From the NCBI GenBank assembly GCA_002269645.1, contig NIVC01004258.1, positions 1 through 52,899 of the forward strand: DNA of 52,899 nt, written 5' to 3'. This DNA is from Macrostomum lignano (lineage: Eukaryota). A program made the translations under genes and the position numbers. Each line of letters starts with the position of its first letter. Position 1 is the stretch's first letter. This document shows, piece by piece, positions 331 through 48,622 of the stretch. The notes below the pieces were generated by a model. The model was not told where the DNA came from. It ran no database searches and was given only the letters and a program-made list of their open reading frames with translations.

Positions 331-2927
331 TCACGTGACCGGCAGGAGCCGCCGCGCGGCCAGGCACCGCTCTGAGCCAGCTGACGCTGCCAACGGCCAC
401 CCCGGGCGCCGAGTCGCCGGCCGCGGCGCCGTCCGGCCGCACAAGGTGGGTGGCGTCAGCGCGCTTCGTCAACCACCGTCGCCATCGTAGGCGAAGACGA
501 GGCGCTCGAGTTCGCGCCGTTCGGCCGGCAGCACCTCGGCGGCGAAGCAGATCCGTGGCCGACTTCAGCGCGCGTCGGGCAGCTGCAGCCGCTGCCGCTT
601 CGCGGCGACGACGACGAGGCCTCCGCCGACTTCGCCAGCTTCCTGCCGGCTGGCGCCTTCTTCGGCGCGGGCGGCCGCAGCTTCGCCGTCGTCCTCGTCA
701 TCGTCGTCGCCGCCATCGCCGCCGGCGTCGCCAGTGAAGCTTGGACTCGGCGGCGAGTTTCTGCAGCCTCTGGAGGTTGGTGGCCTCCCGCCAGGTCTTG
801 TCGTCGCGGACCTTTGTGACCCGGGAAACCGGATGCCAACGCCGCCGGTCGTGTGCTGCGAGGAGTGCGAGAACTCGGCGCCAGTGATCTCCACACCGGG
901 GAGGCCTTCGGGTCGCGCACCAGGCAGTCGGGCAGGAGGCCGCTGCTGCAGCGAAGCCAGCTGGGCGGCGAGCGGCGGTCGTACCTGCGGGGGAGGGGCA
1001 AAGCCGCGTCACGTGACCATTACTGGGATCATTGATCACGTGACCAGGTAGCAGCTCCCGGTATGGGTCTGGAATTCACTGATCACGTGACCAGCTGGCA
1101 TTCACAACAAAGACCATCAGCTCACTTGACCCAGTCGATGGACTTCTGCAGTTTGGCCACCGTGGCATCATCGAAGCCGTTGGCACACTTGCAGACGGTT
1201 CGCCAGGTGCCCTCGCCGTCGTGGCAGCCCATGAGGAAGATGGACAGCTGGCCGCCTTTGCTGCCGGTGCCGTAGTAGCCGCCCAGCACCACCAGGTCGG
1301 CGGAGTCGCGCCATGGCTCCGTCGTGCAGGTAGTCCTTCTTCATCTTCAGCCAGTGCCGCTTGCCGGGCTCGTAGACGCCGTCCAACGACTTCAGCACCA
1401 GGCCTTCGAGACCCTCGTTGAAGACGCGCTTCAGCAGGCGTTCCAGAGGCGCCGGACTGCGGATGAGCTCGGCCTCAGACAGGTGGACTCGATGCTTCAC
1501 CTCCTGCATGCTGCGCTCCAGAACCTGGTTGCAAGTGATCCGACAGATACTATTTAATCGTAAAAGTACTCAAGAGCTTTAGTATGCGAGTACTTAAGTA
1601 CATGAGAAATTACGTACGCAAGTACTTAAGTACACGAGAACTTACGTACGCGATAACTTACGTACGCAAGTACTTGAGTACAGAAAAACTTATGTACGCG
1701 AGTACATGTACTTACGCACACGAGAACTTACGTACGCAAGTACTTGAGTACAGAAAAACTTATGTACGCGAGTACATGTACTTACGCACACGAGAACTTA
1801 CGTACGCAAGTACTTGAGTACAGGAAAACTTACGTACGCGAGTACCTAAGCACACGAAAGCTTACGTACGCGAGTACTTAGTAGAAGAGAAGCAAAGCTT
1901 TGTATCCAACGCACCTCTCTCCGTTCCTTCAGAGGCCGCAGCATCAGATTGTCATTGTTAAACTGCAGACAGTCGAACACAAACAGACAGACGGTGGCAT
2001 CTTTAAAGGCCTCCTTTTTGTGCACGCCGAGGGTGCCAAACGGCAGCGGCTTGTCGGTCTTGGTGTCCATGAGCAGCACCTCGGCGTCCACAATCAGATT
2101 GTCGCCGCCGGGGAAGGCGCGCGGAATGAACTCCTTCAGGTGGGCCACCTGCGAGTTGGAGAATGGGGATAGCAGTTCGGCTTGCAGGGGCTGGCAGTGA
2201 CTGACACGCAAGTACTTGACAAATACCTGGCTACTTACCTTGTGCGGCTGCACAGGCTTGAGCGAGCGGCTGAAGTAGGAGAACTGCTGGCCCTGCTTGT
2301 GCACCTGCACCCGCTCTCCATCGTACTTGATCTCCGCGTAGAACCCGTTCGGGCAGCGGCGCATGGCCTGAGGGAGGGGTGAGCGCCGATCTCAGCTGAT
2401 CTCACTGATCTCAGCCATCACACAGCTGCCAGTGTGACTCAAATCTCACATCTCACAGATCTCAGCCATCACACAGCTGCCAGTGTGACTCAAATCAAAT
2501 CTCACGTGTTCAACGGAGCGGCAGGCCTCGGCCAGCATTGGCAGGACGGGCGTCATGAGAGCGGCCCGGACGCTGAGGTTTCGCTTCACGGGGCTGGCCT
2601 TGGCGGCCAGGGCTCGCTGGAGCACGTCGTGCAGGTTCCTGGAGGCCTGGAAGGCCGCGTAAGCGTTGGGGTCGATGGCGTCCAGGATGTGCTTGGAACC
2701 GGCGTTCATGCGCAAGTCGTGGCGCACCAGACGCAGCACCATGCGCAGGTCGTTGCCGGTGCACCTGGGTGGAGGGGAGCAGTTGGCTGCTGTGACACAG
2801 TGATGGGACTGCTATGCGTCTGTCTGCCTGCCTGCCTGCCTTTCTGCCTGCCTGCCTGTCTGTCTGTCTGCCTGCCTTTCTGTCTGTCTGTCTGTCTGCC
2901 TGCCTTTCTGTCTGTCTGTCTGTCTGT

Positions 2928-3005
<78 letters not shown>

Positions 3006-3067
3006 GCCTGCCTTTCTGTCTGTCTGTCTGTCTGCCTGCCTTTCTGTCTGTCTGTCTGTCTGTCTGT

Positions 3068-3100
<33 letters not shown>

Positions 3101-4600
3101 TGTCTGTCTGTCTGTCTAACTATCTATCTGTCTCACTTGGCGGCCAGCTGCTTGAAGGCGGCGCCCTGGTCGTCCTCGCGGCTAAGGCCGGCCAGCCGGT
3201 CCAGGAAGGCGTCCACCTCCTGCATACTCAGACTGCTCTTGGCGGCGCCGCTGCCCCGCTTGTCGAACTCGATGCCGACTGTCTCGGCGATGTCGCCATT
3301 GGAGTTGAGCAGTTCCTGAAAGACATTTGAGGGAGGACGGGCGACTCAGTCAACCGCGAGCGGCTTGGATTGCCAGCTGCACCAGAAAACGCGGGAGCCG
3401 GTCTCTCCCACCTGCATCGCGTCAATGGGCGCGCCGAGGATGCCGCTGAAGATCTTCAGCAGCTGGCGATCCTTCACGTTGTAGACGCGGCGTTCAACGC
3501 CCGGCAGCAGCAGGCGAATTAGCAGGCTCAGGTCGCCTTTGAAGCCGCCGCCCGTGGAGCCTCTGCGAAAAAATTTGGCGCGGCAGAGTTGATGGCTTAG
3601 CTGGGATGGGTCAGCAGTGACTCACTGAAGGACACTGGGGTGGGTCAGCAGTGACTCACTGAAGGACACTGGGGTGGGTCAGCAGTGACTCACTGAAGGA
3701 CACTGGGGTGGGTCAGCAGTGACTCACCGGGGGACACTGGGGTGGGTCAGCAGTGACTCACTGGGGACACTGGGGTGGGTCAGCAGTGACTCACTGGGGG
3801 ACACTGGGGTGGGTCAGCAGTGACTCACTGGGGGACACTGGGGTGGGTCAGCAGTGACTCACTGGGGGACACTGGGGTGGGTCAGCAGTGACTCACTGGG
3901 GGACACTTGGGTGGGTCAGCAGTGACTCACTGGGAGACACTGGGTTGACTAAGAAGCAGCCAGAGGGAAGCACCAGAGTCAGGCCATTTTACTTGGCTAG
4001 AAACTCGGCCAGCACCCGGGTCTTGTCCGAATAGCCCGGCCGGTCTGCAATTTCGGCCACGAGTTTGCGGAAGGTGCGAAACGCGTTGTCCTTGGCAGCG
4101 TCTTCGGGCGAGTCGCCTGGACCGGCCATCGACAGCGGCGCTCGAGTTGGCAAGGTCGAGGCGGCGGCAGAGGCGGCGGCAGAGGAGGCGGCAGCGGAGG
4201 CTCCGGCGGAGGCCTTGCCAGCGGGGCTGACGGGCAGGGTGGTCTGCACCAGCTTCTTCGGTGACGCCCTGGCGCCGCCGGCCGCTTTGTTGCGCCGCTT
4301 CTCGGCGAGATCGTCGATGAGGCGCTGCAGCAGCTTCTTGTCGGCGTCCTGCAGCGATTCGGCGCCGTCCAAATCGTCCAGCGACTCCACAACCCGCGTG
4401 GTGGCGCGGGCCCGCTCGAACGTGGAGAACAGGCAGCCGGCGTGGTACCACATCTTCATCTCGCCGCCCTCGGACGAGAACGGGTTGGCGGCCACCTTGC
4501 AGAGGCGCAGGGTGTCCTTGTCAATCTTCTGCTTGCACTGCTTGCAGCCGGCCGTGCCGCGCTTGGCGTACTCGCAGCCGAAGCTGCCGACGTTCGACAT
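331..4600 (-). CDS. LIG3: DNA ligase III (alpha-type, with C-terminal BRCT); 8 coding exons; last two exons contain frameshifts in this sequence
   Basis: Exons (minus, all GT-AG): 4600-3993, 3562-3412, 3315-3137, 2764-2506, 2367-2239, 2148-1915, 1524-1126, 984-331. Domains seen: PARP-type zinc finger (CEYAKRGTAGCKQC...WYHAGC), DBD (LLLPGVERRVYNVKDRQ; RHDLRMNAGSKHILDAIDP), adenylation motif EIKYDGER, EGLVLK...PGKRHWLKMKKDYL, OB domain (EITGAEFS...GIRFP), and BRCT remnants (VFAYDGD, ATHLV, VSWLRA..LAARRLLPVT*) ending at TGA 333-331. Exons 1-6 are in phase; indels occur at about 1309, 892, 824 and several more in 331-740. Confidence 0.96.
1565..1880. repeat. GTAC/CGTACG-rich minisatellite in LIG3 intron 6 (70-nt higher-order unit)
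   Basis: 1661-1730 is repeated exactly at 1731-1800 and partly at 1801-1880. Sub-units are built from cttacgtacgc(a/g)agtact. Confidence 0.9.
2819..3132. repeat. (TCTG/CCTG)n compound microsatellite in LIG3 intron 3
   Basis: Continuous tctg/cctg tetramers; source of the spurious LSVC/LPAC ORFs. Confidence 0.95.
3607..3945. repeat. 34-nt minisatellite (about 10 copies) in LIG3 intron 1
   Basis: Unit ggggtgggtcagcagtgactcactgggggacact, with a 34-nt period. Confidence 0.95.
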
Positions 4601-4714
4601 TGCCTGGTTGCTGCTTTCGCTGATGGGGCGCTGCTGGCGGCCGCGGACGGGACAATGCGCTGAGAGGGGGGGGGGACAGGGATGAGGCCAGTGTTGTATG
4701 ATTAATATGCGACA

Positions 4715-5235
4715 CTGGCTGTGTGATACTGGCTATGTGATACTGACTGTGTGATACTGACTGTGTGATACTGGCTGTGTGATACTGGCTGTATGATACT
4801 AATGACAGTGTCACACTAATGGGTGCGTGATACTAATGACAGTGTCACACTAATGGCTGTGTGATACTAATGACAGTGTCACACTAATGGCTGTGTGATA
4901 CTAATGACAGTGTCACACTAATGGCTGTGTGATACTAATAACAGTGTCACACTAATGTCTGCGTGATACTAATGACAGTGTCACACTAATGGCTGTGTGA
5001 TACTAATGACAGTGTCACACTAATGGCTGTGTGATACTAATAACAGTGTCACACTAATGGCTGTGTGATACTAATGACAGTGTCACATTAATAGCTGTGT
5101 GATACTAATGACAGAGTCACACTAATGGCTGTGTGATACTAATGACAGTATTACACTAATGGCTGTGTGACTAATGACAGTATTACACTAATGGCTGTGT
5201 GACTAATGACAGTATTACACTAATGGCTGTGTCAC
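4715..5235. repeat. 34-nt minisatellite between TMEM19 and LIG3, with a 14-nt lead-in repeat
   Basis: Unit tgtgatactaatgacagtgtcacactaatggctg, preceded by (tgtgatactggctg)-type 14-mers. Confidence 0.93.
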
Positions 5236-5442
5236 ACTGGCTATAACTAGTATAACTTAGAATAAATCTAAAACTATAAAGGAGCAACAAAGCTTGCCAA
5301 TTGTTCCCTAACAAAAGAATCAAACAAACAGTCATCATTCACTCTTGTAAACTTACTCCCATTAAAAATGCAGCAGTATATTTGGAAACCAATGGCAGTT
5401 GAATTTTATCATCAAGATACGGAATTATCTGGCAAAGTTGGC

Positions 5443-5448
5443 TTTATT
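5443..5448 (-). terminator. Candidate poly(A) signal of TMEM19
   Basis: AATAAA on the minus strand about 100 nt after the stop codon. Confidence 0.45.
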
Positions 5449-5544
5449 CTTAGTATAGCGGATTATATCAGTGGCGGCAATTAGGCATGTACAGAACAGC
5501 TGGAAATCAGTGATCAGGAGCCCTGGATTGACACCGGCAGGTGC

Positions 5545-8379
5545 TCACAGCAGCCAAGGCGTCGCTGCCAAAGCCAGTCGGGGCAGCAGCAGGCAGGTGA
5601 TAACGGATGACAGCAGGTTAACCAGGTGATTGTTCAGCACCCGGCAGCCGCTGATGTGGCGGATTCGCGGCCCGGGGTGCTCCGTCACCAGCCCCGTGTC
5701 GATGTCGAAGCCTGGGAAGCGAAGGGGCGCCACTGAATGCCAAGGGCCAACAATGGGTGCCAAGGGGCGCTAATGAGGTGCCAAAGGGCGCTAATGAGGA
5801 TGTCAAGGGGCGCCAATGAGGATGTCAAGGGCCAACAATGAGGTGCCAAGGGCCAACAATGAGGTGCCAAGGGACGCTAATGAGGATGTCAAGGGACGCT
5901 AATGAGGATGTCAAGGGGCGATAATGAGGATGTCAAGGGGCGCCAATGAGGATGTCAAGGGGCGCCAATGAGGATGTCAAGGGGCGCCAATGAGGATGTC
6001 AAGGGGCGCCAATGAGGATGTCAAGGGGCGCCAATGAGGATGTCAAGGGGCGCCAATGAGGATGTCAAGGGGCGCCAATGAGGATGTCAAGGGGCGATAA
6101 TGAGGATGTCAAGGGGCGCCAATGAGGATGTCAAGGGGCGCCAATGAGGATGTCAAGGGGCGCCAATGAGGATGTCAAGGGGCGCCAATGAGGATGTCAA
6201 GGGTGCGAGGCACAGAATATACACAGAATGCCAAATCGAGCGATTTCAATGAAGCCGAATTAAAATTCGTGTGCACTACTCTTGTTGTGAAGTCTATAGC
6301 TAGTAGTATAAATTAGCGAAGAATAATAAGTAACCTGGAGGACCAAGTGTAAAATTGTATAATTTTTTCGTATTTTATCATCTAAACAAACCAAACACTT
6401 TGAAGAACTCCAGTTAAGCAGAATTCATTCGCATCATCAACAAACAACAGTTAAACAGCATTTAATCGCATCAGCTTCTTCCTCTCTTCAGCTCTCTTTA
6501 TTCCTGTCGTACGCCCCCGCTTTCTCTGCTGAGCGAGCGTCCTCTGGCTGTTGCACCAGTGATGCAGGCGAAGTCTGGCAAACAACTTAGCCATTGCCTT
6601 AGCACAGCGTTCGCCGTGATCCGAGCTGTGCGTCTGAATATTTGCAAGAACAATGGGAAAGAACTTTTCCTGAAGCCGTTTGCTCACGTCCTTCAGAACG
6701 AACAACTCTTTGTCCGTTGTCGTGAAGGAGCGCTCCATCTGACAGACTGCAGATATACTGCCTTGTTGGGAATGATCCAGCCAACTGTGCCAGCAGGCAG
6801 GTCTTGAGCTTCCTCAGTGGAGTCTGCTGAAATCAGACCATCGCCCTGCGGACCAGGACTGGGCGCACTTGCACTTGCTGTTACTTTGGCCTGAAACTCG
6901 GTCAGCAAGGTGCTGCCATCGTTCTCGCAGTTGCTGTTGGTCTGCGATAGACAGCCCAACAAGTGGTTGACAGTGGATTTTCCAGCCATGCTGCGCAGAA
7001 AAGCTCACACTGAACTTAGTTTTCATTTGAAAGCAAAGAATAAAAGTCGCTCTTAGAATAGTCTATGGCAAAAACTCAAGCCCTACTTATCAAAGCTTCA
7101 CAACAAGAGTAGGCTGGTGTAATTTCAATTCTTGCACCGATTTTTTAAACAAAAATGCTCGAATCCGCATTCTGTGTATATTCTGTGGTGCGAGGTGGCC
7201 AAGGAGATGAGCAGACAGGTAATACACCAGATCTCAGCTGAGCTAAACTCACCTGAGTACTGCAGGGTGGCGCCCAGCAGGGAGTCCACCAGCGAGCCGA
7301 TGAAGCCGGCGGCGGCACCGGCGGCCAGCAGGAGCGGCAGCTGTGGCGGCGCGGCTATCAGGTCGTCGGCGGGCACGGCGGCGCAGACGGCCAGCCAGTA
7401 GGCGAGGCCAACAATACCGCCGCCGGCGCAGCTGGCCGCCGTTCCGACCAGGGAGACGCCGCCGTTGGTGCCCGGCGGGACTCGGCGAAGGCCGATGATG
7501 AGGCGCGGCTGGCCCCAGGCGAAAGCGGCGCCGACCTCGGAGGCCCAGGTGTCGCCGCAGCAGGCGGCCAGGGCGGCCAGCAGGGCCAGGGAGACGTAAG
7601 AAGGCGACGGGTAGCGGGCGAGGTCGATTGGCAGCTCGGGTCGCGGAGGCGAGGCGAAGGCGAGGTAGGCGACGGCGCACAGGGCCGCGGCAAGGCCGTT
7701 GCAGAGGACCTGCGTGAAGGGAGGGGGAAGTCGGGGCAGTCCGGGATGAATTCAGGAGAGAGGTCAGGCCACTCTGCCACGTGCGATCCTTTGCTCCAAG
7801 GATGGAACGTAAGCTCAGCGAATATCGTGATAATTTGTTAAGGCTTAGGGAGCCGGTTTCATGGCAACAAATAACTCAGGCCCACACACCTGTATCCAGT
7901 TGCGCTGCGCGCCCTGCTCAAAGTCGGCCTCCAGACGGACCTTCCGATGGGCGCCCAGGCGGGTCACATAGGAGCCGGAGGCGAAGAAGGCCAGCAGGGC
8001 TGCCACATAGCAAGCGTTGGCGTAGGCCAGCAGGGCGCCAATGGCATAGCCTGAAACAGTAGGTGGGGAGGCTCTGAGGCCTGCAGATTGCCAACTGACT
8101 GACAGACCAAGGCCTTGGTACTGGAAGGCTGCAGTGCTTCACAGCAGCTGCCTCTGGCAATTGCAGCCTCCCCTTGTAAGTCTGCAACTTGCATTCCAGA
8201 ACTATCCTAGTGAGATTGGCGTTTTTCAGCTTTGTTTTTTCCACTAAGACTCTTAGACTCTCAGCACAACTCAGCTCACCTAGCAATGCTCCAGAAATAG
8301 ATAGCGATTTCTTCTTTAACCCAGCCTTGGCAACAAAGAAAGGAAACACCAATGAGAATAGGATCCTCAAGTAATACAT
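5545..8379 (-). CDS. TMEM19: Transmembrane protein 19 (DUF92 family), 4 coding exons, 294 aa
   Basis: Exons 8379-8280, 8050-7890, 7709-7253, 5711-5545; total 885 nt, phases consistent. Motifs GLKKKSLSISGAL, GAQRNWIQVLCNG, GDTWASEVG, VPPGTNGGVS, GSLVDSLLGATLQYSG and HISGCRVLNNHLVNLLSS match the TMEM19 family. An acceptor (TTTGCAG) 9 nt upstream of the ATG implies a further 5' exon or leader. Confidence 0.93.
5735..6202. repeat. 22-nt minisatellite in TMEM19 intron 3
   Basis: Unit gaggatgtcaaggggcgccaat, about 20 copies, degenerate at the left end. Confidence 0.95.
6211..7187 (-). mobile_element. P-element-superfamily DNA transposon, internally deleted (977 bp), in TMEM19 intron 3
   Basis: Perfect 21-bp TIRs cacagaatatacacagaatgc (6211-6231) and gcattctgtgtatattctgtg (7167-7187). 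Perfect 8-bp TSD GTGCGAGG (6203-6210, 7188-7195). The interior encodes a frameshifted P/THAP9-like transposase C-terminus. Confidence 0.88.
6451..7000 (-). pseudogene. Truncated, frameshifted P-element/THAP9-like transposase C-terminal fragment
   Basis: ...NSNCENDGS...GWIIPNKAVYLQSV / MERSF...KLFARLRLHHWC...ERKKLMRL resembles the GNC-DD, GL.YPS and F.IR.HH.K blocks of P-type transposases. Recognised by eye; frame break near 6740. Confidence 0.6.
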
Positions 8380-8664
8380 GGCTTTTTGCTGCAAAGCATG
8401 GATTTGTAATCCAGAAAGGTTTTTTAAATTGATTTTTTGTAGCTTGAATTTGTAATTATAATTGTATGGATAAATATTTATAAACAGCCAATTATCTGTC
8501 AAAGCAGCTAATCAATTTTTAGCCATTTCTGCAATAATTACTAAACTCTAACTAAATTATACAGTTTTATTATTGGATTGGAACTTTTATAAGTTGCTTA
8601 AGAGTAAATATTGTAAAAGCTACTGAAATAGAATGGTTTTCTCGGGGTGGCCTGGTAGGTCTTT

Positions 8665-8684
8665 GAATCCCACCGCTGCCACCA
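8665..8684 (-). other. Primer-binding site complementary to the 3' end of tRNA-Leu
   Basis: Minus strand TGGTGGCAGCGGTGGGATTC is the complement of the tRNA-Leu 3' end GAATCCCACCGCTGCCA+CCA. It lies 1 nt from the LTR end (...ACAACA). Confidence 0.88.
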
Positions 8685-8685
8685 A

Positions 8686-9668
8686 TGTTGTACCTGTGGT
8701 TGTCCTGCTGTACAGCGCAGTGACTTGGGCTCCGTCGTCTCACTTAGAAGCCTTCTTAACTTTAGTAGCGTAGGTAGTGCTGCCACCAGTTCCTTCAGGT
8801 CTCGGCCTTCGATGAGGTGAGCTTCCCGTCGGAACGAAATAAACAAGTCAACGAACTCAGCACAGCGTGCAGATTTGCAGATTAATGAACAAGGCGTCCT
8901 GATCAGCAGATCCCCGCCGGGCTCAGGGGTGGCTGGGAAGGCAGTGTTAGCCTCCCTTAGGCTTGGGCTTTAGTGGGGTCTCAGTCAGACCAGTACAAAC
9001 GGATTCAGTACGCAAAGGGCACTTAGTTAGACACTGACGCACACGGGATCTTAGTGAATTCTCCGCAGATAAGAAGCCAAAATCCTTGACGGAAACAAGG
9101 GGAGAGGGGTCCTATTTATAGCCGGGAAACACCCACGCACAAGACCTCGTGACTTGTTCTATTTTTAGAACTGACGTCACTTGAGATCTCGAGGCAGGGT
9201 CTCAGTGCGCGCAAGACCTCGTGACTCGTTCTATTTTTAGAACTGACGTCACTTGAGGTCTCCGGCCAGAGTACACGCGGCTGTGACTCAGTTGCTATTT
9301 TTAGCAACATGAGTCACTCCTCTCCTTAGAGAAGGGAGGGGTCCGAAAGCACGTGATTCTCCCGGTAAACAGGGCCAACGAGTGCAGCAAACATGTTTAC
9401 TGCACTTTAGGACTCGAAGAACGCAGAGTCTGTCATGTGACTTGCTCCCATGACAGAGGAAAACGGGACGGGAACGAAACAGAGACAGCCCACAGCAGAG
9501 AAGCTGAGGGCTGAGAACAGAGACGCAGAAGGGCAGAACAGGCCAAGGGGGCAACAGACGGGCCAAGGGGGGTGGGAAGCTGACCAGCGGCAGACAGCAA
9601 CCCAGGGCGAGGGCGAGGGAGACTGCTGACAAAGTGGGACGCCTAACATCAACTAGCGGATCACTACA
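8686..9668 (-). mobile_element. LTR of a retrotransposon (5' LTR + PBS, internal region lost), probably Ty3/Gypsy
   Basis: On minus it begins TGTAGT (9668) and ends ACAACA (8686), followed by the PBS. It contains a TATA box, a duplicated ~50-nt U3 motif (9140-9260) and a GC content distinct from the AT-rich flanks. Only ~25 nt of internal sequence follows the PBS. Superfamily is inferred. Confidence 0.82.
9113..9120 (-). promoter_or_regulatory. TATA box within the LTR
   Basis: GGCTATAAATAGG on the minus strand, at the expected U3/R position. Confidence 0.6.
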
Positions 9669-12006
9669 CTACCATTGTTCTATAATTAACATCAAAAGGC
9701 TTTTTTGATTATCATATTTTATATTCTAGGGTCTGGGGTAATAAAAGAGGTGGAATTATATTCTTGCAAAAATTAACTTGATTCTCTCATTTTTTCATGT
9801 CTATCAAAGAGAGAAGCTACCCCTTTGGCCCCATAAATCCCTGTTCACAGAACCTAATAATTCTCCTTGCATTTAAAATAAAAAATCTCAATCTAGCCTC
9901 CACTAGGCTTACCTTCAAAATTATTTTGATAGTAGTACTTCAAAAACTACTCTACTAACTTAGTGGTAAAGACAAAGTATATCTACACAATGCTTATAGG
10001 AGATAAAAATCTATTGCATAAGACCCCAACCCTAGGCACTTAAAGCTTTAAAACTAGCAATATTCATTTATTTTTACTATTTAATACAGTATTTTCACAA
10101 GGTCAAAATTTCACATTGAAAACTCTAGTAACACTTCATAAGGTTAAAATTTTATAATATCAATAAACTTTAGCAAAGGATTTTGGCATTCTTTTATTAT
10201 GCAATCCCCTTTGTTGCACTGTTTTGTTATATGATATGATCCTCTTGCACCTAGTTGATGCATTGCCATTGATTTATTATTAGATCCCCATTAAAAAAGT
10301 CAAAGCAAGGTCAGTCTTCACTTTATCATAATGAAATTAAATAATTAAAAATACAAATCAATGAGAAGCCACACTAAATATTCATTTTCATAATATGATC
10401 CCTTAAATAGTAAATTTGGCAAATGTAGAATCTGATATGATAATGAAAATGAAGAGGGTATTCATTTCGTGATCACTTCATTAACAATTTTGTATCATGT
10501 AGATTACAAAAAAAGTAATACAATTATTTTTATAATATTATCCTCAACTTCTTATGGCCATTGCCATGTATAACTATGGCAGAATTCTAGACCTATCAAT
10601 ATCATCTAACTAACTAAAGTAAAGTATTTAATTTCATTTGGTTTATCATCTCTGTTATTTATCAGGAACAACTAAAACTACTAAGAAAATATAAAAAAAT
10701 GGGAGCTTATTTTTTGTCTTTGACTATACAAAATTAATGTTTTTGTTTTGCGATATAAGCCTTTTTTTATTCTAATATACTCAAGTAAGTTGACTGCCAA
10801 GGGGCTTCTATAACTTTTTAATAAGCTCTAAAAATTGTTCATCTATAGTTAAGAAACAAAGCCATGCTACAAAAGTGCAGCATCTGAGGATGCAGATCAA
10901 ACTATAACTCTAAAACTAAATGAACAAGAATCTTTTCTTTTCCAACTAAGCCCAATTCATATAAGCTTTGGAAAATGGCATTGCCAAATTTTATTGAGAT
11001 AAATCTCCCAGTCAATTTCTAAGCATTGTGCAATTGTTTCTTCAAAATTGCCTAAAATAATTATTTTAGATCATAACAGTGCATATGAGCATTTATAAGA
11101 ACCATTGGCCTATGGACGCTCCAATGTAAAATGGTTTCAATTCTGAAAAATAACTCTTGCTATTAAAAGACATGCAACTGCAAAGGAGGGTATCAATAGA
11201 ATAGATATTATTTTTGATAAGAGCATTCTTGCAAGGGAATTTATAGAAAAAGTATCATAGGGGGCCTATGGAAAATGGTGTCATCTTTGTCAAATTATCA
11301 ATGGCTATTCAATTTTTTATATTTATATTATAGCTACTTTATTATTTATTTACCAATACGCGCAACTCATGTGCAAAAATTATTCTTTTCTCTTGGCAAG
11401 TACTAAGGCTTACCTTCCCACTAAAAAGAAGTCTACTATTATCGATAATGTTACTCAAAGATTTATAAACATTTTTAAAGGCTTGGTAAGGCACTTGTCA
11501 AAAGTTGCCTTGCTTCAAACATACATATACCACTTTTTCTTACAAGTTTTTATTCTTTTTTATGTCAATGTTCCTTTATACTTTGTTATGACCATTTGCC
11601 ACTAGTATTGTACTATTGTACACCATTTTGTATATATTAGGGCCTATTCAGAATTTTAATAAAACACATTTGGCTCTGTACAGCAAGGGTTCTACTACGA
11701 CTTGCTAGTTATATAAGAAAAAAATTTCACGACATTTCTACACCAATTCTAATTTTATTTTTCAATATAATTAAAGTATCTCAGCTATAGGACCATAGAA
11801 GAATGAACAAACTTTTTGCCATGATATGGCTTGTTTCACGTCCTGGTAGTTTTAGTTGTCCCTATTATATATATTGTTAAACATCAAACAGTCAGCTCAT
11901 AATGATAAATAGATTCCTAAAACCAAGCAAGCCGAGCTGTGCCATTTTAATAGTTTTTAGGCATAGGACATGTAGAATTGTATGTTTTTGTTATGTAAGG
12001 AATTGG

Positions 12007-12418
12007 GGCAATGTCCTAGTTTCACCTGTTAAATTATTTTGACCTGAAATTTAAAATGAACAAACAAAAGCAAGTTTATTAAAAGTTTAAAATGAGTCTT
12101 AGGTCTTAAAAGGAGTATTACAGGGTGTAGTAATGTGTCAGCCAGTACAGAAAGCTTCCTGACGGTGGCTGCAGTTCCATGAGTTTGCTATTAGATGATA
12201 GGTTGCCAGCCAATGCATTGTCGACTCAGCATCAACTGTCAAGTGTCAACAGCACCAGATCGCAGTGACTGATCTCAATGTCACAGAGGTCAGTTGATGG
12301 CTGCAAATTAGCAGGAGGTATGATATTTGCAGTGCTCGAGGTCATCCAGCCATGATTTGTGCTGAAAATGACAAAAATCGGGTCAAAATAATTTAATGCG
12401 GGAAACTAGGACATTGCC
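12007..12418. mobile_element. Merlin-type MITE (412 bp)
   Basis: ~40-bp imperfect TIRs starting GGCAATGTCCTAGTTTC. Perfect 8-bp TSD GGAATTGG (11999-12006, 12419-12426). GG-initiated TIR plus 8-bp TSD fits Merlin; it shares the GGCAAT terminus with the element at 49888. Confidence 0.82.
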
Positions 12419-13125
12419 GGAATTGGATAGGGGGCCTATAAAATAAACATAGAATCTTAATATTCTGAACGAAAAGATTTATGAATATCAATTGAGCTAT
12501 ATGAAAGGCACAACATATCAAAGGATAAACACTGGCTCGGCCTCTTATCGGAATCAGTAACCATTTTTGTGCTGAAAAAAATAAAACTCCCTATCTCCGT
12601 AGTGTATTGTTTTCGAAAATACTTTTCCAAGAAACGGATTTTCCCGGACCTCTTTTATTTAAGTTAAGTAGTAGTCAACATAAAGAGTAAGAGTTCTGCA
12701 AGTATTGTTCAGTAGAATTTTTAAAGTAATTCTTAAACTAAAAAGTAATAAAACTAAATTATACACTACTTAGCATTTAACACTTGTTTTACTTTATGTA
12801 AAGACTGGCACAGTTTTAACACTGCCTTTCTGCAAAATTTTTTTTTGGGCTTAAATAAGTCAAATTATGGTTTTTTACTACTCTGCACAAGTTTTAGTTT
12901 TAAACATTTGTTTCTAAAGCGTTGTCTACGCAGATGTCTTTTCGCTTTTGATTACATCAATTTTAAATAATTTTCGTACAGGTTGAGGCGTTAAAGATAT
13001 TATTTATCTTATTACGATTTTACTTGCTGTAGTTTTACCTGAACCTGGCATAGGACTGCTCACGAAGTCTTCAACTTGATTGCTGCTTTTTAATTCAACA
13101 ACAAACAGAGTTTAAATTTTGAATC

Positions 13126-25100: not shown

Positions 25101-27197
25101 GCCTCCTCAGTGTGTTATGCACTGCCTCCTCAGTGTGTTATGCACTGCTCCTGCTTGCACACTGCTGCCCCAGACCATATTCTCAATCTCTGCGCCCTTC
25201 CCCCCGCCAGGCGTGCGCGAAAGCGACCCGGAGCTGGAGCTGCTCCTTGACGAGCCCTTCGAAGGCGGCATCAAAATCCGCGGCGTCGACGGCTGCTGCC
25301 TGGTGAGCGGCACCGCCATTCTCAACCTGAGCCACGGCGAGCGGACCAACCCCAACATCCGGCTCACCGTGGCCTGCAAGGACCGGCCGGATCAGCATGT
25401 TCAGCTGTGGGCCGACCTGCAGCAGCACAAGCAGCAGCAGGGCAGAGCAAACCAGCAGCCAAGGCAGCAGCAGCAGCAGCAGCAGCAGCAGGGGTCGTTC
25501 AACTTCTCAGCCTTGGTGTCCGCCCTGCAGCAGCAGCAGCCTGTGCAGCAGGCCGCTTCACCGGCCCGAAACCAGCCTACGGCTGAGCACGAGTCCCAGC
25601 GCCTGCTGAACTCCCTGCTAGCCGAATGGGATTGGCCGGTCCCGGCCATAGACTTCCAGGTGTACGGGGACGTCTGCTCCGCCGTGGTTCGATTCCCCAA
25701 CGGCTTCGTGATGGAGGGGCAGCCGATGCGGTCCCGGCCCGAGGCCAAGCTTGATGTGGTGAGTCGGGGGCGCGAGCGAGGCTGGAGTTAAGCAGAATCG
25801 GCGTCGGTTAGTACGCAGATATTCTGCTTGAATCGTTCACAGGGCAGCCAATTAATTAGTGCTGGATTGAACGAATTACGTGCATTACTGATCCCAAATT
25901 CACAAGTAAAGTACTGGTCCCAAACTCACAGATGCAGTACTGGTCCCACACTCACAAGTACAGTACTGGTCCCACACTCACAAGTACAGTACTGGTCCCA
26001 CACTCACAGATGCAGTACTGGTCCCACACTCACAGGTGCAGTACTGGTCCCACACTCACAGGTACAGTACTGGTCCCACACACACAGGTACAGTACTGGT
26101 CCCACACTCACAGGTGCAGTACTGGTCCCACACTCACAGGTACAGTACTGGTCCCACACTCACAGGTGCAGTACTGGTCCCACACTCACAGGTACAGTAC
26201 TGGTCCCACACTCACAGGTGCAGTACTGGTCCCACACTCACAGGTACAGTACTGGTCCCACACTCACAGGTGCAGTACTGGTCCCACACTCACAGGTACA
26301 GTACTGGTCCCACACTCACAGGTGCAGTACTGGTCCCACACTCACAGGTACAGTACTGGTCCCACACTCACAGGTGCAGTACTGGTCCCACACTCACAGG
26401 TGCAGTACTGGTCCCACACTCACAGGTGCAGTACTGGTCCCACACTCACAGGTGCAGTACTGGTCCCACACTCACAGGTGCAGTACTGGTCCCACACTCA
26501 CAGGTACAGTGCTCAAAAGCTTGCTTAGACAGTTCCCAAGTGGACAAAGGCACTCTTACTTCTCTGCTTCTTTATTCCTTAAATTTTCTGTCTTCAGGTG
26601 CGCAGACTCTGCGACTATTGCAATTCGCTAAAAGTGCAACAGCAGCCCCAACAGCAGCCGCAGCATCAAAGGCAGAGATCTCACCAGCAGCAGTACAGTA
26701 AGCCGCAGTCAAATTACACCTACCAGCCTGCTTCAGCTCAGCAGCAGCAAAGACAGAATCTGCAACAACAGCAGCAGCAGCAAAGACAGAATCTGCAACA
26801 ACAGCAGCAGCAGCAAATACAGAATCTGCAACAACAGCAGCAGCAGCAAATACAGAATCTGCAACAGCAGCAGCAGCAAAGACAGAATCTGCAACAGCAG
26901 CAGCAGCAAAGACAGAATCTGCAACAACAGCAGCAGCAGCCGCAGGACCCGAAGGCCCAGGCAGTGGAGCAGGCCTTGCGGGCCATGCTGCAGATCCCGA
27001 AGCCCGCTGCCGACCAGCCCGCAGCTGCCGCAACTGCGTCTGCAACTTCGAAGCACCAGCAGCAGCAGCAACAACAACAGCAGCAGCAGCAACAAAAGCC
27101 GCGCTCGAACGGCTCGAAGAAACCGAAATCTGCCCCGAAGAAGCGGCTGGGCATCAACCTGGACGGCCTGGGGTCTCAGCAGCAGCCGGGCAGTTGA
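13126..27197 (+). CDS. XRN1: 5'-3' exoribonuclease 1, 12 coding exons, 1474 aa
   Basis: Exons 13126-13200, 16659-16855, 17822-18230, 18603-18944, 19601-19858, 19955-20094, 20963-21777, 23059-23418, 23721-23899, 23985-24486, 25211-25758, 26598-27197; total 4425 nt, all GT-AG and in phase. Motifs: [105 protein letters not shown]. The exon 10 donor was chosen by alignment length to the vertebrate protein. Confidence 0.97.
13495..16208. mobile_element. Possible degenerate foldback/MULE-like element in XRN1 intron 1
   Basis: Short repeated motifs caatttgg(t/c)(g/a)ac at 13497-13555 recur inverted at 16125-16205. Flanks share only gattct. No transposase seen. Confidence 0.3.
14519..15045. repeat. 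Three tandem copies of a ~178-bp unit in XRN1 intron 1
   Basis: Copies start at about 14519, 14699 and 14876 (cccggc...gcgacgaagaacaatgaaattacactaaaacatgtatcatcg...). Confidence 0.92.
16940..17787. repeat. 27-nt minisatellite in XRN1 intron 2
   Basis: Unit gtcagctgatcccaatatcccatgtct. Confidence 0.95.
18995..19520. repeat. 29-nt minisatellite in XRN1 intron 4
   Basis: Unit agaattcccctgtcctacattagcatttt. Confidence 0.94.
20320..20890. repeat. GGATCC-rich minisatellite (39- and 53-nt units) in XRN1 intron 6
   Basis: Units ggaggatcctgttgaaagatcctggtagaggatccggct and a 53-nt variant containing ataatccggaattgagaatcc. Confidence 0.92.
21800..23045. repeat. 28-nt minisatellite in XRN1 intron 7
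   Basis: Unit cagctg(c/t)c(t/c)caaatccccagtgtgctca, about 44 copies; source of three spurious long ORFs. Confidence 0.96.
23440..23705. repeat. 31-nt minisatellite in XRN1 intron 8
   Basis: Unit aatggaatccgcccctgttccaaccgaacc(t/c). Confidence 0.95.
24510..25150. repeat. 23-nt minisatellite in XRN1 intron 10
   Basis: Unit cctcctcagtgtgttatgcactg. Confidence 0.95.
25905..26512. repeat. 26-nt minisatellite in XRN1 intron 11
   Basis: Unit cagtactggtcccacactcacaggt(g/a); the g/a variants alternate over part of the array (52-nt higher order). Confidence 0.95.
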
Positions 27198-27654
27198 ACT
27201 GCTCAACTCTGTTGAGTACCTATTGAGCTGTAGACTAGATAACTGAAGACTTCGTTCTGTTTTGACATCTCCCTCCAGTGCTTGTGTGACTCAAATTTAG
27301 CTCTAATTGCTGGATTTCTACTGCTTTGACATGTTTCTCCGACTCTTAGCGTTCGAGCGGTTTGTAACTCCCGCCAGTTTAATAATTAATAGCTTAATCT
27401 AATTTTCTCTCCGATTTTTAAGTCTCAAGTGTTCATGCCGCTCCGGCGTTCTGCCTGCAGCCTCATCAATATTTTTATTGTTTTTGGTGTTTTGACGCTC
27501 TGTTGCTTGTATTGCTTCTGCAAGCAATTCGCTGCAGAGCCTCTGCCGTTTGGTAGACAAGATAATATAGCCGCTCCACCTGGTACTGCCTGTTGTGTTC
27601 AAGAAAATGTTTCTGGCGTTCTTTCATTCATTTTCTTTAATAAACTACTTCATG

Positions 27655-28190
27655 ACCCAAGCCAGGTGTCACCAGCTCCATGCCCCAAGCCAGGTGTGTC
27701 ACCAGCTCCATGCCCCAAGCCAGGTGTGTCACCAGCTCCATGCCCCAAGCCAGGTGTGTCACCAGCTCCATGCCCCAAGCCAGGTGTGTCACCAGCTCCA
27801 TGCCCCAAGCCAGGTGTGTCACCAGCTCCATGCCCCAAGCCAGATGTGTCACCAGCTCCATGCCCCAAGCCAGGTGTGTCACCAGCTCCATGCCCCAAGC
27901 CAGGTGTGTCTCCAGCTCCATGCCCCAAGCCAGGTGTGTCACCAGCTCCATGCCCCAAGCCAGATGTGTCACCAGCTCCATGCCCCAAGCCAGGTGTGTC
28001 ACCAGCTCCATGCCCCAAGCCAGATGTGTCACCAGCTCCATGCCCCAAGCCAGGTGTGTCACCAGCTCCATGCCCCAAGCCAGATGTGTCACCAGCTCCA
28101 TGCCCCAAGCCAGGTGTGTCACCAGCTCCATGCCCCAAGCCAGGTGTGTCTCCAGCTCCATGCCCCAAGCCAGGTGTGTCACCAGCTCCG
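27655..28190. repeat. 30-nt minisatellite between XRN1 and BRAP
   Basis: Unit ccaagccaggtgtgtcaccagctccatgcc, about 18 copies, ending ~10 nt before the acceptor ccgctgcag (28204). Confidence 0.96.
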
Positions 28191-28217
28191 CCCCGCCGCT
28201 GCAGGCCGCCTCATGGC

Positions 28218-30307: not shown

Positions 30308-30370
<63 letters not shown>

Positions 30371-30445
30371 GTGTCTGTCTGTCTGTCTGTCTGTGTGTCT
30401 GTCTGTCTGTCTGTGTGTCTGTCTGTGTGTCTGTCTGTGTCTGTG

Positions 30446-30480
<35 letters not shown>

Positions 30481-30553
30481 GTGTCTGTCTGTGTCTGTGT
30501 GTCTGTCTGTCTGTCTGTGTGTCTGTTTGTCTGTGTGTCTGTCTGTGTCTGTG

Positions 30554-30612
<59 letters not shown>

Positions 30613-31437: not shown

Positions 31438-31819
31438 CTGATGGTTTCCCCCAGCACGAGCCGCTCATTTCAGCCCCTGAGTTGTTCTGCATCAGCATTC
31501 AAATACAATTAGTTCGAATATTATATGACGTATCAAGGCTATCACAATTTATTACTCAACTCGTGTTAGCGTATTTGCTTTCCTGTTCCTTTTTTAAGCC
31601 TGTATTTCCTGTTGAAATTTTTGCATAGCTAAATATAAATATCCATGCTGTACGGATCACTTTGTGTACTTTTGTGTCTGCTTGTTCATTGGCTCACTGA
31701 TTGCAGCTTGTCTTTATTGGTATATTTTATTTAATCTTCCATTATTCGTTGGATAATAATATGAATTTGCTTCCCCAGGTTCCCCTTCCAAGAACCCCAG
31801 TTTCCCCGAATTCATCCTT

Positions 31820-32032
31820 GCTAGACCATTGCTGCTGTCAGTCAGGTGTCAGAGTGGATTGCTAGACCATTGCTGCCGTCAGTCAGGTGTCAGGGTGGAT
31901 TGCTAGACCATTGCTGCCGTCAGTCAGGTGTCAGGGTGGATTGCTAGACCATTGCTGCTGTCAGTCAGGTGTCAGGGTGGATTGCTAGATCATTGCTGCC
32001 GTCAGTCAGGTGTCGGTGGATTGCTAGACCAT
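31820..32032. repeat. 41-nt minisatellite between BRAP and the MCCC2-like gene
   Basis: Unit ttgctagaccattgctgccgtcagtcaggtgtcagggtgga, about 5 copies. Confidence 0.93.
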
Positions 32033-32056
32033 TGCCACTCCGCAGCAGCCGCCCGC

Positions 32057-35000
32057 ATGCGCACCACGCGGCCACTGCGCGCCCTGCTCGGCTCCCCGCT
32101 GGCGAAGCTGCAGCTGGGCGGCCTCGCCGAAGCAGCCGCTGAGATGCGCCGCCTGCAGGCCGCGCTGGACGCCCTCGAAGCCGAGGCCAGCGCCGGCGGG
32201 GGGCCGCGCGGCCACCAGCGCCACTGCAGCGTCAACAAGAAGGTGGCGCCGAGGCAGCGCCTGCGGATGCTGTTCGACGGCGGCAAGTTCTGCGAGATCA
32301 ACCGGCTGGCGGGCCACGGCATGCCCTACGGCACCGTGCCGGCTGCCGGCTCCATCACCGGTGAGCGTCCGGTAGACAGATTTGAATTGTCACTGATGGC
32401 CTCATTGTCACTGATGGCCTCATTGTCACTGATAGCCTAATTGTCACTGATAGCCTAATTGTCACTGATAGCCTCATTGTCACTGATGGCGCCATTGTCA
32501 CTGATGGCGCCATTGTCACTGATAACCTCATTGTCACTGATGGCCACATTGTCACTGATAGCCTCATTGTCACTGATGGCGCCATTGTCACTGATGGCCC
32601 CATTGTCACTGATAGCCTCATTGTCACTGATGGCCCCATTGTCACTGATAGCCTCATTGTCACTGATGGCCTCATTGTCACTGATGGCCTCACTGTCACT
32701 GATAGCCTCATTGTCACTGATAGCCTCATTGTCACTGATAGCCTCATTGTCACTGATGGCCTCACTGTCACTGATAGCCTCACTGTCACTGATGGCCTAA
32801 TCGTCACTGATAGCCTCATTGTCACTGATAGCCTCACTGTCACTGATAGCCCCATTGTCACTGATAGCCTCACTGTCACTGATAGCCCCATTGTCACTGA
32901 TAGCCTCAACTCCTATTCAAATTCCCTACAGCCTTCGGGCGCATCAGCGATCGCCTGTGCATCGCTGCAGCCAACGACGCGACAGTGAAGGGCGGCACCC
33001 TGTACCCCATCGGCGTCAAGAAGATGCTGCGCCTGCAGGAGCTCAGCGGCACCTGCCGCATCCCCATTGTCTACCTGGTGGACAGCGGCGGGGCCTTCCT
33101 ACCGCTGCAGGTACAAGCGCACACTTCGTCTTTGAGTGCTTAAGCGAGGCTTGGGAATCCTGAGCTGAGATTCCTGAAGCCTTAACACCCTGATCCCCAT
33201 ACTCCTCATTCCTGATCCCCATACTCCCCATACATGATCCCCATACTCCCCATTCCTGATCCCCATACTCCCCAGTCCTGATCCCCATACTCCCCATTCC
33301 TGATCCACATACTCCCCATTCCTGATCCCCATACTCCCCATTTCTGATCCCCACACTCCTCATTCCTGATCCCCATACTCCCCAGTCCTGATCCCCATAC
33401 TCCCCATTCCTGATCCACATACTCCCCATTCCTGATCCCCATACTCCCCATTTCTGATCCCCATACTCCCCATTCCTGATCCCCATACTCCCCAGTCCTG
33501 ATCCCCATACTCCCCATTCCTGATCCACATACTCCCCATTCCTGATCCCCATACTCCCCATTTCTGATCCCCATACTCCCCATATCTCCCCATTCCTGAT
33601 CCCCATACTCCCCATTTCTGATCCCCATACTCCCCATTCCTGATCCCCATACTCCTCATTCCTGATCCCCATACTCCCCAGTCCTGATCCCCATACTCCT
33701 CATTCCTGATCCCCATACTCCCCAGTCCTGATCCCCATACTCCCCATTCCTGATCCCCATACTCCCCATTCCTGATCCCCATACTCCCCATTCCTGATCC
33801 CCATACTCCCCATTCCTGATCCCCATACTCCCCAGTCCTGATCCCCATACTCCCCATTCCTGATCCCCATACTCCCCAGTCCTGATCCCCATACTCCCCA
33901 TTCCTGATCCCCATACTCCCCATTCCTGATCCCCATACTCCCCATTCCTGATCCCCATACTCCCCATGCCTCCCCAGTCGGAGATTTTCCCGGACGCGCA
34001 GCACGGCGGCCGCACCTTCTTCAACGAGGCGACGCTGAACGCGCGCGGCGTCGCCCAGCTGGCGCTGGTGCTCGGCTCCAGCACGGCCGGCGGCGCCTAC
34101 GTGCCGACCATGTGCGACCAGGTGGTCATGGTGGACCGCATCGGCCACGTCTTCCTGGGCGGCCCGCCGCTCGTCCAGGCCGCTCTCGGCGAAGTTGTCA
34201 GCGCGGATGAGCTCGGCGGCGCGGCGCTGCACTCGCACACAAGCGGCTGCTCCGACCACTTCGCTGGCGACGAGGCCGAAGGCTTCCGGCTGATGCGGGA
34301 GATTGCCGGCACCCTGCCGAGGCCGCCGCCGCCGCCGCCCGCTGAGCCGCCCGCCGACCCGATGTTCCCCAGCGCCGAGCTGGCCAGCCTCGGCCTCAAC
34401 CTGCTGCCGCGGGAGGGCGAGGCGCGCCGGATCGGCCTGCTGAACATCCTGGCCCGGCTGCTGGACTCCAGCCAGCTGCTCGAGTTCAAGCCCACCTTCA
34501 GCCACGGCCTCGTATGCGGCTTCGGCCGCATCTGCGGGTGAGCAACTTTCTGCCTGTCTGTCTGCCAGTCTGTGTGTCTGTCTGCCCGTCATTCAGTTCC
34601 CGCATCCCCCACCCCCAGTCGCACTGTCGGGCTGATGGGCAGCTGGACGCGGCTTGGCGAGAAGGACGCCGTCAAAGGCGCGCACTTCCTGGAGCTGTGC
34701 GGTCACCGCGGCCTCCCGCTGGTGTCGCTGGTGCACACCGAGCCGGACCTGCCCGAGCCCGCCGGCTCCGAAGCGCTCGCAGAATCGGCGGCCGCCTGCC
34801 TGCGAGCGAAGGCGCGGATGATGGCGCTGTCGGCGGCCTTCCCGCTGCCCCGGCTCAGCCTCATCGTTGGCGACGCAGCCGGCTGCGACTACTTCCTCAT
34901 GGTGAGGCGGGCTGGGGATCCCCGCTGGAATTCCTGGGAGTGGCAACCTTGATGGCCGAGGAACCGTTGCAAATCGACGCCCAGAAAATGGTTTTCAAGA

Positions 35001-35358
35001 TCTTGAAGGCTTCAGTTTTCAAGGCGAGCCACAGCTCCACACACGGAATCGAACCCCGAACCCACAGGGCGGCCGCTGCATGAGCCCGGACTTCCTGCTC
35101 GCTTGGCCGAACGGCCGCCTGTCCGAGCGGCTGGACGCGGCCGAGCCCGGCGCCGACGCCTTCAAAGCCGCAGGCCAGCTGTGGATCGATGACGTCATCA
35201 GGCCGGCCGAGACCAGACTGCAGCTGGACCGGCTGCTGCGGCTCTCCCTGCACTACAGCGGCCTGCCTGTCCACTCGGCTGGGCCGGTTGCTAAGCAGCA
35301 GCAGCCCAGCGGCTCGCGCCCCACTTACTGGCCGAGTTATCCCATCCTGCGCATGTGA
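32057..35358 (+). CDS. MCCC2-like: Biotin-dependent carboxylase carboxyltransferase beta subunit, methylcrotonoyl-CoA carboxylase beta-like paralogue; 5 exons, about 538 aa
   Basis: Exons 32057-32360, 32932-33110, 33978-34537, 34619-34901, 35068-35358; total 1617 nt, in phase. Motifs [101 protein letters not shown]. The start codon is uncertain because an acceptor lies just upstream. Confidence 0.88.
32388..32905. repeat. 18-nt minisatellite in MCCC2-like intron 1
   Basis: Unit cattgtcactgat(a/g)gcct. Confidence 0.95.
33188..33966. repeat. 22-nt minisatellite in MCCC2-like intron 2
   Basis: Unit cctgatccccatactcccca(t/g)t, running up to the acceptor. Confidence 0.95.
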
Positions 35359-39733: not shown

Positions 39734-39779
39734 TGCGGGCGGAGCTGCGGAAGGCGGGACCGGCAGATATAGAAGCTAT

Positions 39780-42997: not shown

Positions 42998-43059
42998 CTA
43001 ACCCTAACCCTAGCCTAACCCTAACCCTAACCCTAACCATAACCCTAACCTAACCCTAA
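42998..43059. repeat. Interstitial telomere-type (CCCTAA)n tract; a degenerate second tract at 43444-43490
   Basis: taaccctaaccctagcctaaccctaaccctaaccctaaccataaccctaacc. Confidence 0.9.

Positions 43060-48562: not shown

Positions 48563-48622
<60 letters not shown>

Follow-up and report, generated by a model that had tools for sequence, protein, structure and literature searches.

In the flatworm Macrostomum lignano, a single 35-nt spliced leader (SL) is trans-spliced onto the transcripts of 30% of genes, and 15% of genes are in operons (Ustyantsev & Berezikov 2021, PMC8629364). The spacers within these operons are inflated by repeats; once the repeats are adjusted for, the spacing peaks near 100 bp (PMC8629364). 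Here we examine a locus from this genome, contig NIVC01004258.1 of the Mlig_3_7 assembly (GCA_002269645.1), which was analyzed over its whole length of 52,899 bp (the window). It contains two divergent gene clusters: TMEM19 and LIG3 on the minus strand, and XRN1, BRAP, and an MCCC2-like gene on the plus strand. A first-pass annotation, made from the sequence alone, had proposed that each cluster is an operon. We conclude that the two clusters are probably operons of the M. lignano type that would be resolved by SL trans-splicing.

Two aspects of the published work bear on this locus. First, genes in M. lignano were assigned to an operon if they are adjacent and in the same orientation, with no gene on the opposite strand between them, if their repeat-adjusted distance is under 1 kb, and if the downstream gene is SL trans-spliced (PMC8629364). 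Second, the genome annotation was made by cutting assembled transcriptional units at peaks of SL reads and poly(A), and the genes from each unit were named with a shared prefix followed by gN (Wudarski et al. 2017, PMC5730564). For instance, the unit Mlig030697.1 contains the genes.g1 and.g2 (PMC5730564). The first-pass annotation was right to point to Macrostomum and to expect SL trans-splicing and operons there: both of these, as well as the repeat-inflated spacers, are already known for the M. lignano genome (PMC8629364, PMC5730564).

Two divergent gene clusters

The genes of the two clusters are:

5545..8409, minus strand: TMEM19 (DUF92), head gene; PAA48026.1, BOX15_Mlig027203g1
331..4659, minus strand: LIG3 (DNA ligase 3), downstream gene; from the ATG at 4600-4598 to the stop at 333-331
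13126..27197, plus strand: XRN1 (5'-3' exoribonuclease 1), head gene; complete annotated coding region, 1474 aa
28206..31437, plus strand: BRAP (BRCA1-associated protein), 5'-partial; PAA48028.1, BOX15_Mlig006518g3, 563 aa; ATG at 28218
32051..35358, plus strand: MCCC2-like carboxyltransferase; PAA48029.1, BOX15_Mlig021687g3, 540 aa; ATG at 32057

On the minus strand TMEM19 is followed by LIG3, and on the plus strand XRN1 is followed by BRAP and MCCC2-like. According to the annotated gene lists, no gene intervenes, so both clusters have the adjacency and orientation of published operons. Further copies of this block are found on NIVC01000108.1 and NIVC01001281.1 and, in part, on NIVC01000625.1. 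The order of the genes in the clusters is identical in three or four other copies. Having multiple copies fits with the duplication that is known in the M. lignano line.

Gene identities were checked with Pfam domains and by comparison to PDB. TMEM19 matches DUF92 (E 3e-73), and XRN1, which has an in-frame TGA two codons upstream of its ATG at 13126, matches XRN_N (E 3e-101). BRAP contains the BRAP2, RING, and zf-UBP domains, and its first exon is a 100% match to BOX15_Mlig006518g1 of Macrostomum lignano. LIG3 has the zf-PARP and DNA_ligase_A_M domains and matches human LIG3 (PDB 3L2P) with E 4e-223. The MCCC2-like protein has a Carboxyl_trans domain and matches human MCCC2 with E 7e-101, with a C-terminus that has diverged.

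TMEM19 and LIG3 share a transcriptional-unit prefix

In the window, TMEM19 and LIG3 are named Mlig027203 g1 and g2. In the other copies, the same pair is named Mlig020357 g1/g2, Mlig020357 g4/g5, or Mlig019205 g1/g3. The prefix is shared in 4 of 4 genomic copies, under three prefixes in total. Since a common prefix arises only via a unit that spans both genes, each of the three prefix clusters should hold a TMEM19-LIG3 precursor. A shared Mlig prefix with different gN is the mark of a polycistronic unit in the annotation of Wudarski et al. (2017), and at this locus only TMEM19-LIG3 carries it. We therefore consider it highly likely that TMEM19 and LIG3 are co-transcribed. In effect, this is already recorded, as the public annotation names one transcriptional unit. 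Gene finders fuse such neighbors: UniProt has models of 451 and 1655 aa that are labelled TMEM19.

Annotated 5' ends and candidate acceptors

Close before the start codons are AG dinucleotides that could act as splice acceptors. We list them along with a C2H2 zinc-finger gene that served as a control:

4660..4661, minus strand: candidate SL acceptor AG of LIG3, with the pyrimidine tract tccctgtccccccccctctcag before it; exon start 4659, 59 nt before the ATG
8389..8390, minus strand: TTGCAG acceptor of TMEM19, 9 nt before the ATG; matches [T/C]TNCAG
28203..28204, plus strand: candidate SL acceptor AG of BRAP (CTGCAG, matches [T/C]TNCAG); exon start 28205, 13 nt before the ATG at 28218
32047..32048, plus strand: most likely SL acceptor AG of MCCC2-like (cagCAG); exon start 32049, 8 nt before the ATG at 32057
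36380..39746, minus strand: C2H2 zinc-finger gene, convergent, control; 5'-partial start 39742, 2 nt past the AG at 39746-39745

LIG3, BRAP, MCCC2-like, TMEM19, and the zinc-finger gene are annotated with 5'-partial coding regions, each beginning at the first complete codon in the transcript model. The 5'-partial starts of LIG3, BRAP, and MCCC2-like are all at the proposed AGs or 1-27 nt past them, and never upstream. In the window, BRAP and MCCC2-like have coding regions that start 1-3 nt past the AGs. For LIG3, the coding region begins with the first full codon past the AG in copy L005 (NIVC01001281.1) and 3-11 nt further downstream in the other copies. The LIG3 and BRAP models that do not start exactly after the AG all begin downstream of that AG, by 2-27 nt. 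TMEM19 itself is annotated from directly after its TTGCAG acceptor in copy L005. The first-pass annotation had placed AGs 11-59 nt before the start codons of LIG3, BRAP, and MCCC2-like. The distances are 59 nt, 13 nt, and, for MCCC2-like, 11 or 8 nt, because besides the AG at 32044-32045 that it chose (11 nt before the ATG), there is a second at 32047-32048. We prefer the second because it fits the annotated start of the coding region, which is at 32051 in 3 of 3 copies.

Could these AGs be coincidental, with ordinary start sites a few nt before each ATG and no splicing? The frequency of AG is 0.066-0.069, so about 4 AGs are expected per 60 nt, and the presence of one in the 60 nt before an ATG is by itself uninformative. 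Also, annotated starts differ between copies, with a scatter of 1-27 nt. On the other hand, the annotated start lies exactly after the AG in 8 of 17 gene-copy models, when about 20% would be expected to, and these include the MCCC2-like models of all three copies and at least one model each for LIG3, BRAP, TMEM19, and the zinc-finger gene. The AGs of LIG3 and the zinc-finger gene follow strong pyrimidine tracts, and AT-rich promoter-like sequence is absent upstream: the spacers are 50-60% GC, like the gene bodies, as compared to ~28-36% upstream of XRN1 and the zinc-finger gene and ~45% upstream of TMEM19. Finally, 45% of the M. lignano genes that are conserved in human are SL trans-spliced (PMC8629364). 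Coincidental AGs are therefore a very improbable explanation.

The published trans-splice motif [T/C]TNCAG adds some detail. It is matched by BRAP (CTGCAG) and TMEM19 (TTGCAG) and is not matched by LIG3 (TCTCAG) or MCCC2-like (GCAGCAG). Only 44% of published trans-splice sites have it (PMC8629364), so it is supportive and not defining. We also looked for transcript contigs that carry the SL, and found that the 90% clusters of BRAP, MCCC2-like, LIG3, and TMEM19 hold only members from GenBank or UniProt and no Logan contigs.

Overall, LIG3, BRAP, and MCCC2-like are very probably SL trans-spliced, and the SL would be added at 4659, 28205, and 32049. If so, the 5'-partial coding regions in the GenBank record mark SL sites and not incomplete genes.

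The SL ends in AUG. With the junctions at 4659, 28205, and 32049, this AUG would not share the frame of LIG3, BRAP, or MCCC2-like and would open overlapping reading frames of ~66 codons (LIG3), 9 codons (BRAP), or all of exon 1 (MCCC2-like). If the SL were joined at 8388, its AUG would be in frame with the ATG of TMEM19 (AUG-CAA-AAA-GCC-AUG).

Repetitive spacers between the genes

The elements between the genes of each cluster are:

5443..5448, minus strand: AATAAA, likely poly(A) signal of TMEM19, 96 nt past its stop
4714..5232, minus strand: two adjoining minisatellites in the TMEM19-LIG3 spacer, a 14-mer (4714-4800) and a 34-mer (4786-5232)
27639..27644, plus strand: AATAAA, 441 nt past the XRN1 stop; the sole canonical signal in the XRN1 3' region
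27651..28189, plus strand: 30-mer minisatellite in the XRN1-BRAP spacer, 18 copies; ends 15 nt before the AG at 28203-28204
31818..32035, plus strand: 41-mer minisatellite in the BRAP-MCCC2-like spacer, 5.4 copies

What the first-pass annotation observed in the sequence is confirmed: the gene names, the AATAAA at 27639, and the AG positions are right, and the genes are co-oriented with gaps of ~0.6-1.0 kb, much of which is minisatellite. From stop codon to next ATG, the gaps are 945 bp (TMEM19-LIG3), 1021 bp (XRN1-BRAP), and 620 bp (BRAP-MCCC2-like), and arrays occupy 519, 539, and 218 bp of these. The 30-mer array begins just after the AATAAA at 27639 and ends 15 nt before the BRAP acceptor.

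If poly(A) sites are placed by their hexamers, then the non-repeat DNA that separates the likely poly(A) signal and the acceptor is ~15-20 nt for XRN1-BRAP, ~50 nt for BRAP-MCCC2-like, and ~245 nt for TMEM19-LIG3. For all three pairs, the repeat-adjusted distance is below the 1000 bp of the published criterion (PMC8629364). Even the raw distances are below 0.8 kb in the window.

The length of the spacer arrays varies 2-4 fold between copies, and the flanks are near-identical. For instance, the stop-to-start gap of XRN1-BRAP is 1008 bp in the window and 1116 or 2758 bp in other copies, and that of BRAP-MCCC2-like is 613 bp in the window and 776 or 1469 bp elsewhere. Varying arrays with stable flanks are as expected of a dispensable spacer.

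The arrays could instead be ordinary first introns, with a non-coding first exon (for example, at 27530-27580) joined to the AG by conventional cis-splicing. There is a donor-like GT in the XRN1 3' untranslated region and in every unit of both plus-strand arrays (AGGTGTG, AGGTGTC), and almost all true introns at this locus are filled by arrays. Nevertheless, in every copy the annotated models are 5'-partial, beginning at the AG or just past it, and the StringTie/TACO assembly would have taken in a leader exon that junction reads supported. Also, the unit of TMEM19 and LIG3 was divided into g1 and g2 and was not kept as one gene. We give conventional cis-splicing very little weight.

Under the operon interpretation that we favor, RNA polymerase II would start upstream of TMEM19 (the head gene of the minus strand) or XRN1 (that of the plus strand) and continue into the gene or genes that follow. 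The upstream mRNA would be cleaved and polyadenylated past its own poly(A) signal. The 35-nt SL (CGGTCTCTTACTGCGAAGACTCAATTTATTGCATG), which is encoded elsewhere in the genome, would be spliced to the AG a few nt before the ATG and would form the 5' end of the downstream mRNA. The minisatellite-filled spacer would be thrown away like an intron. Within the window, we found no SL sequence, SL RNA gene, tRNA, or Rfam family.

Minisatellites are not confined to the spacers. Almost every intron and spacer between 1560 and 34000 in the window, and at the loci L001, L003, and L005-L007, has a private minisatellite, with units of 4-70 nt in arrays of 0.1-1.2 kb. Their copy number differs by up to ~4-fold between paralogous copies. 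We saw no clear difference in length or composition between the intercistronic and the intronic arrays. AGGT is present in the two spacer arrays of the plus strand and, among 15 intronic arrays, in 1; these numbers are too small for interpretation.

A speculative idea, which we think is very unlikely to be correct, is that the private minisatellites between the poly(A) signal and the acceptor are functional spacer elements and not neutral filler. They could serve as GU-rich downstream cleavage elements, or the AGGTGTG arrays, which resemble 5' splice sites, could recruit the SL particle, as with the U-rich (Ur) element of Caenorhabditis elegans. If so, then the 2-4 fold differences in copy number between paralogous copies would tune the expression of the downstream gene.

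Operonic or monocistronic genes

SL trans-splicing does not by itself imply an operon. BRAP and MCCC2-like (and, less likely, LIG3) might be SL trans-spliced yet monocistronic and tightly packed. Each would have its own promoter, in the 3' untranslated region or last intron of the upstream gene or in the minisatellite, and the SL would remove a short outron.

The zinc-finger gene is relevant here. It has an array (of a 23-mer) ~70 nt upstream, followed by a strong pyrimidine tract, the acceptor, and the ATG. Within the 1.7 kb that we looked up, no co-oriented gene is annotated upstream of it, and the AT-rich tract beyond has no clear coding exon. The first-pass annotation had cautioned that TMEM19 and the zinc-finger gene also have acceptors just before the ATG, and this caution was well placed: TMEM19 appears to be trans-spliced in one copy despite being a head gene, and the annotated start of the zinc-finger gene comes directly after an AG. 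The acceptor signature therefore marks trans-splicing and not operon membership, and an acceptor before the ATG does not alone mean that a gene is in an operon.

Several other observations also weigh against the operon interpretation. About 60% of M. lignano genes that are SL trans-spliced are outside of operons (PMC8629364). The prefixes of the plus-strand genes differ: BRAP is Mlig006518 (g1-g3, on three contigs) and MCCC2-like is Mlig021687 (g2 and g3), with one gene per copy of each unit, so these genes lack the shared prefix of a polycistronic unit. The separate prefixes imply that the RNA-seq assembly bridged neither XRN1-BRAP nor BRAP-MCCC2-like in any copy. RNA-seq units did bridge the TMEM19-LIG3 spacer, which is comparably repetitive. 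Also, canonical AATAAA is absent before the BRAP-MCCC2-like spacer, where the nearest variant is AATAAT at 31755.

The argument from 5' ends has weaknesses of its own. It rests on the coordinates of coding regions in GenBank, and those of near-identical copies differ by a few nt. In copy L003 of the zinc-finger gene (NIVC01001281.1), the acceptor is CTG instead of CAG (the AG is mutated to TG), and the annotated start is still at the same base. It seems that the annotated 5' ends are common to the copies and were not measured for each of them, so the copies are not independent evidence.

Nevertheless, we consider it unlikely that the downstream genes are monocistronic, although internal promoters are a serious alternative for the plus-strand trio. 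On the plus strand, the unique DNA that separates poly(A) signal and acceptor comes to only ~15-50 nt, and 2-4 fold variation in array length between copies would be odd for a promoter. The TMEM19-LIG3 prefix is common to all copies, and pairs like these are operons by the published positional criterion. Transcriptional units often break in repeat-rich spacers, as the authors of the operon survey warned (PMC8629364).

Our confidence differs for the two clusters. The first-pass proposal of a TMEM19-LIG3 operon is borne out by the shared unit prefix; its XRN1-BRAP-MCCC2-like operon lacks that support, as BRAP and MCCC2-like have differing prefixes. XRN1, BRAP, and MCCC2-like would count as an operon by the positional criterion only, as their published RNA-seq units are separate. 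We lean slightly towards the three genes forming one polycistron. We did not find support for the suggestion that such an operon links RNA decay, ubiquitin signaling, and a carboxylase.

The implications are mostly for annotation, and the locus is otherwise a tidy worked example. If the plus-strand trio proved to have one precursor, it would be one more three-gene operon among roughly ten thousand operon genes. The five Mlig identifiers did not turn up in the searchable literature and supplements.

The divergent region between the head genes

The two clusters are separated by:

8410..13125: divergent intergenic region, with no annotated gene

The promoters of TMEM19 and XRN1 are presumably in this region. 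The first-pass annotation described transcription outward from an AT-rich region at 8.4-13.1 kb. We did not find support for this beyond there being two divergent head genes with promoters between them. The AT-rich tract is also longer than it had stated, as it extends into intron 1 of XRN1, to about 16.6 kb. The region varies between copies, with kb-sized insertions and deletions.

One of these is a segment of ~1.05 kb (8623-9669) that lies 214 bp upstream of the TMEM19 5' end and is absent from two other copies. It contains a pair of 65-nt direct repeats (9136-9272) and has no hit in Pfam. The two copies without this segment have a different insert, of ~870 bp, elsewhere in the divergent region.

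Gene models and other features of the window

LIG3 is annotated with a 5'-partial coding region at 4648-1168 (PAA48025.1, BOX15_Mlig027203g2, 654 aa). In the window, a 1-nt insertion (an extra C) near 1308 breaks the frame relative to three other copies: at 1300-1315 (minus strand), the window has ATGGCGCGACTCC and the three other copies have ATGGCGGACTCC. Because of this frameshift, the annotated protein is 654 aa instead of 888 aa. The insertion is either an error in the long-read assembly or a sign that a redundant copy is in decay. The first-pass annotation identified LIG3 correctly and read through the insertion.

TMEM19 has 4 exons (8409/8379-8280, 8050-7890, 7709-7253, and 5711-5545, with the stop at 5547-5545). 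MCCC2-like has five (32051-32360, 32932-33110, 33978-34537, 34619-34901, and 35068-35358), and this model gives PAA48029.1 exactly.

Intron 3 of TMEM19 contains a 977-bp segment (6211-7186, minus strand) that three copies have and copy L005 lacks. Within the segment are two overlapping open reading frames, of 98 and 95 aa, which begin 1 nt past an AG. The UniProt models A0A1I8I9Q1 and A0A1I8I7Y0 splice these reading frames into TMEM19, and they are not annotated in GenBank. We considered whether there might be a gene nested in the intron (6990-6450, minus strand) and rejected it as a conserved gene: the two reading frames overlap in different frames, have no hit in Pfam, and are unannotated, and the 977-bp segment is missing from one copy.

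Beyond the zinc-finger gene, there is a short interstitial telomere-type repeat, (CCCTAA)n, with about 10 units (42998-43059). There is also a purine-only, AG/GA-rich tract of low complexity (47890-49260; ~1.3 kb), with a GC skew of +0.88. Near the purine tract are large AT-rich arrays at 39812-40763 and 43954-45971.

Comparison to known operons

The closest described systems are the operons of M. lignano itself (Wudarski et al. 2017, PMC5730564; Ustyantsev & Berezikov 2021, PMC8629364), which are from the same organism and the same assembly and consist of co-oriented neighbors. As in the published operons, the annotated 5' ends of the downstream genes at this locus are at AG acceptors, the spacers consist largely of tandem repeats with adjusted distances far below 1 kb, and the genes are conserved housekeeping genes. 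Clusters of two or three genes together make up 93% of the published operons. TMEM19-LIG3 shares its unit prefix exactly as Mlig030697.g1 and.g2 do, and we see no difference in kind.

The SL2-type operons of C. elegans are also similar. They too have a polycistronic precursor, with formation of the upstream 3' end and then trans-splicing of the downstream gene, an effective spacer of about 100 nt, and genes that are functionally unrelated. However, C. elegans has an SL2 of its own for this purpose and spacers with a Ur element, while M. lignano has one SL for all targets. Also, because of the minisatellites, the spacers at this locus are 0.3-0.8 kb, and up to 2.3 kb in another copy.

The operons of the parasitic flatworms (Schistosoma and cestodes; PMC12582326) are from the same phylum. 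Their SL ends in AUG, and their second genes are trans-spliced. Their cistrons are usually separated by tens to a few hundred bp (PMC12582326), which we count as a likeness. Schistosoma has far fewer genes in operons than M. lignano does (PMC12582326). The 300-bp threshold on raw distance that was used for parasitic flatworms (PMC12582326) would miss pairs at this locus unless the repeats were subtracted.

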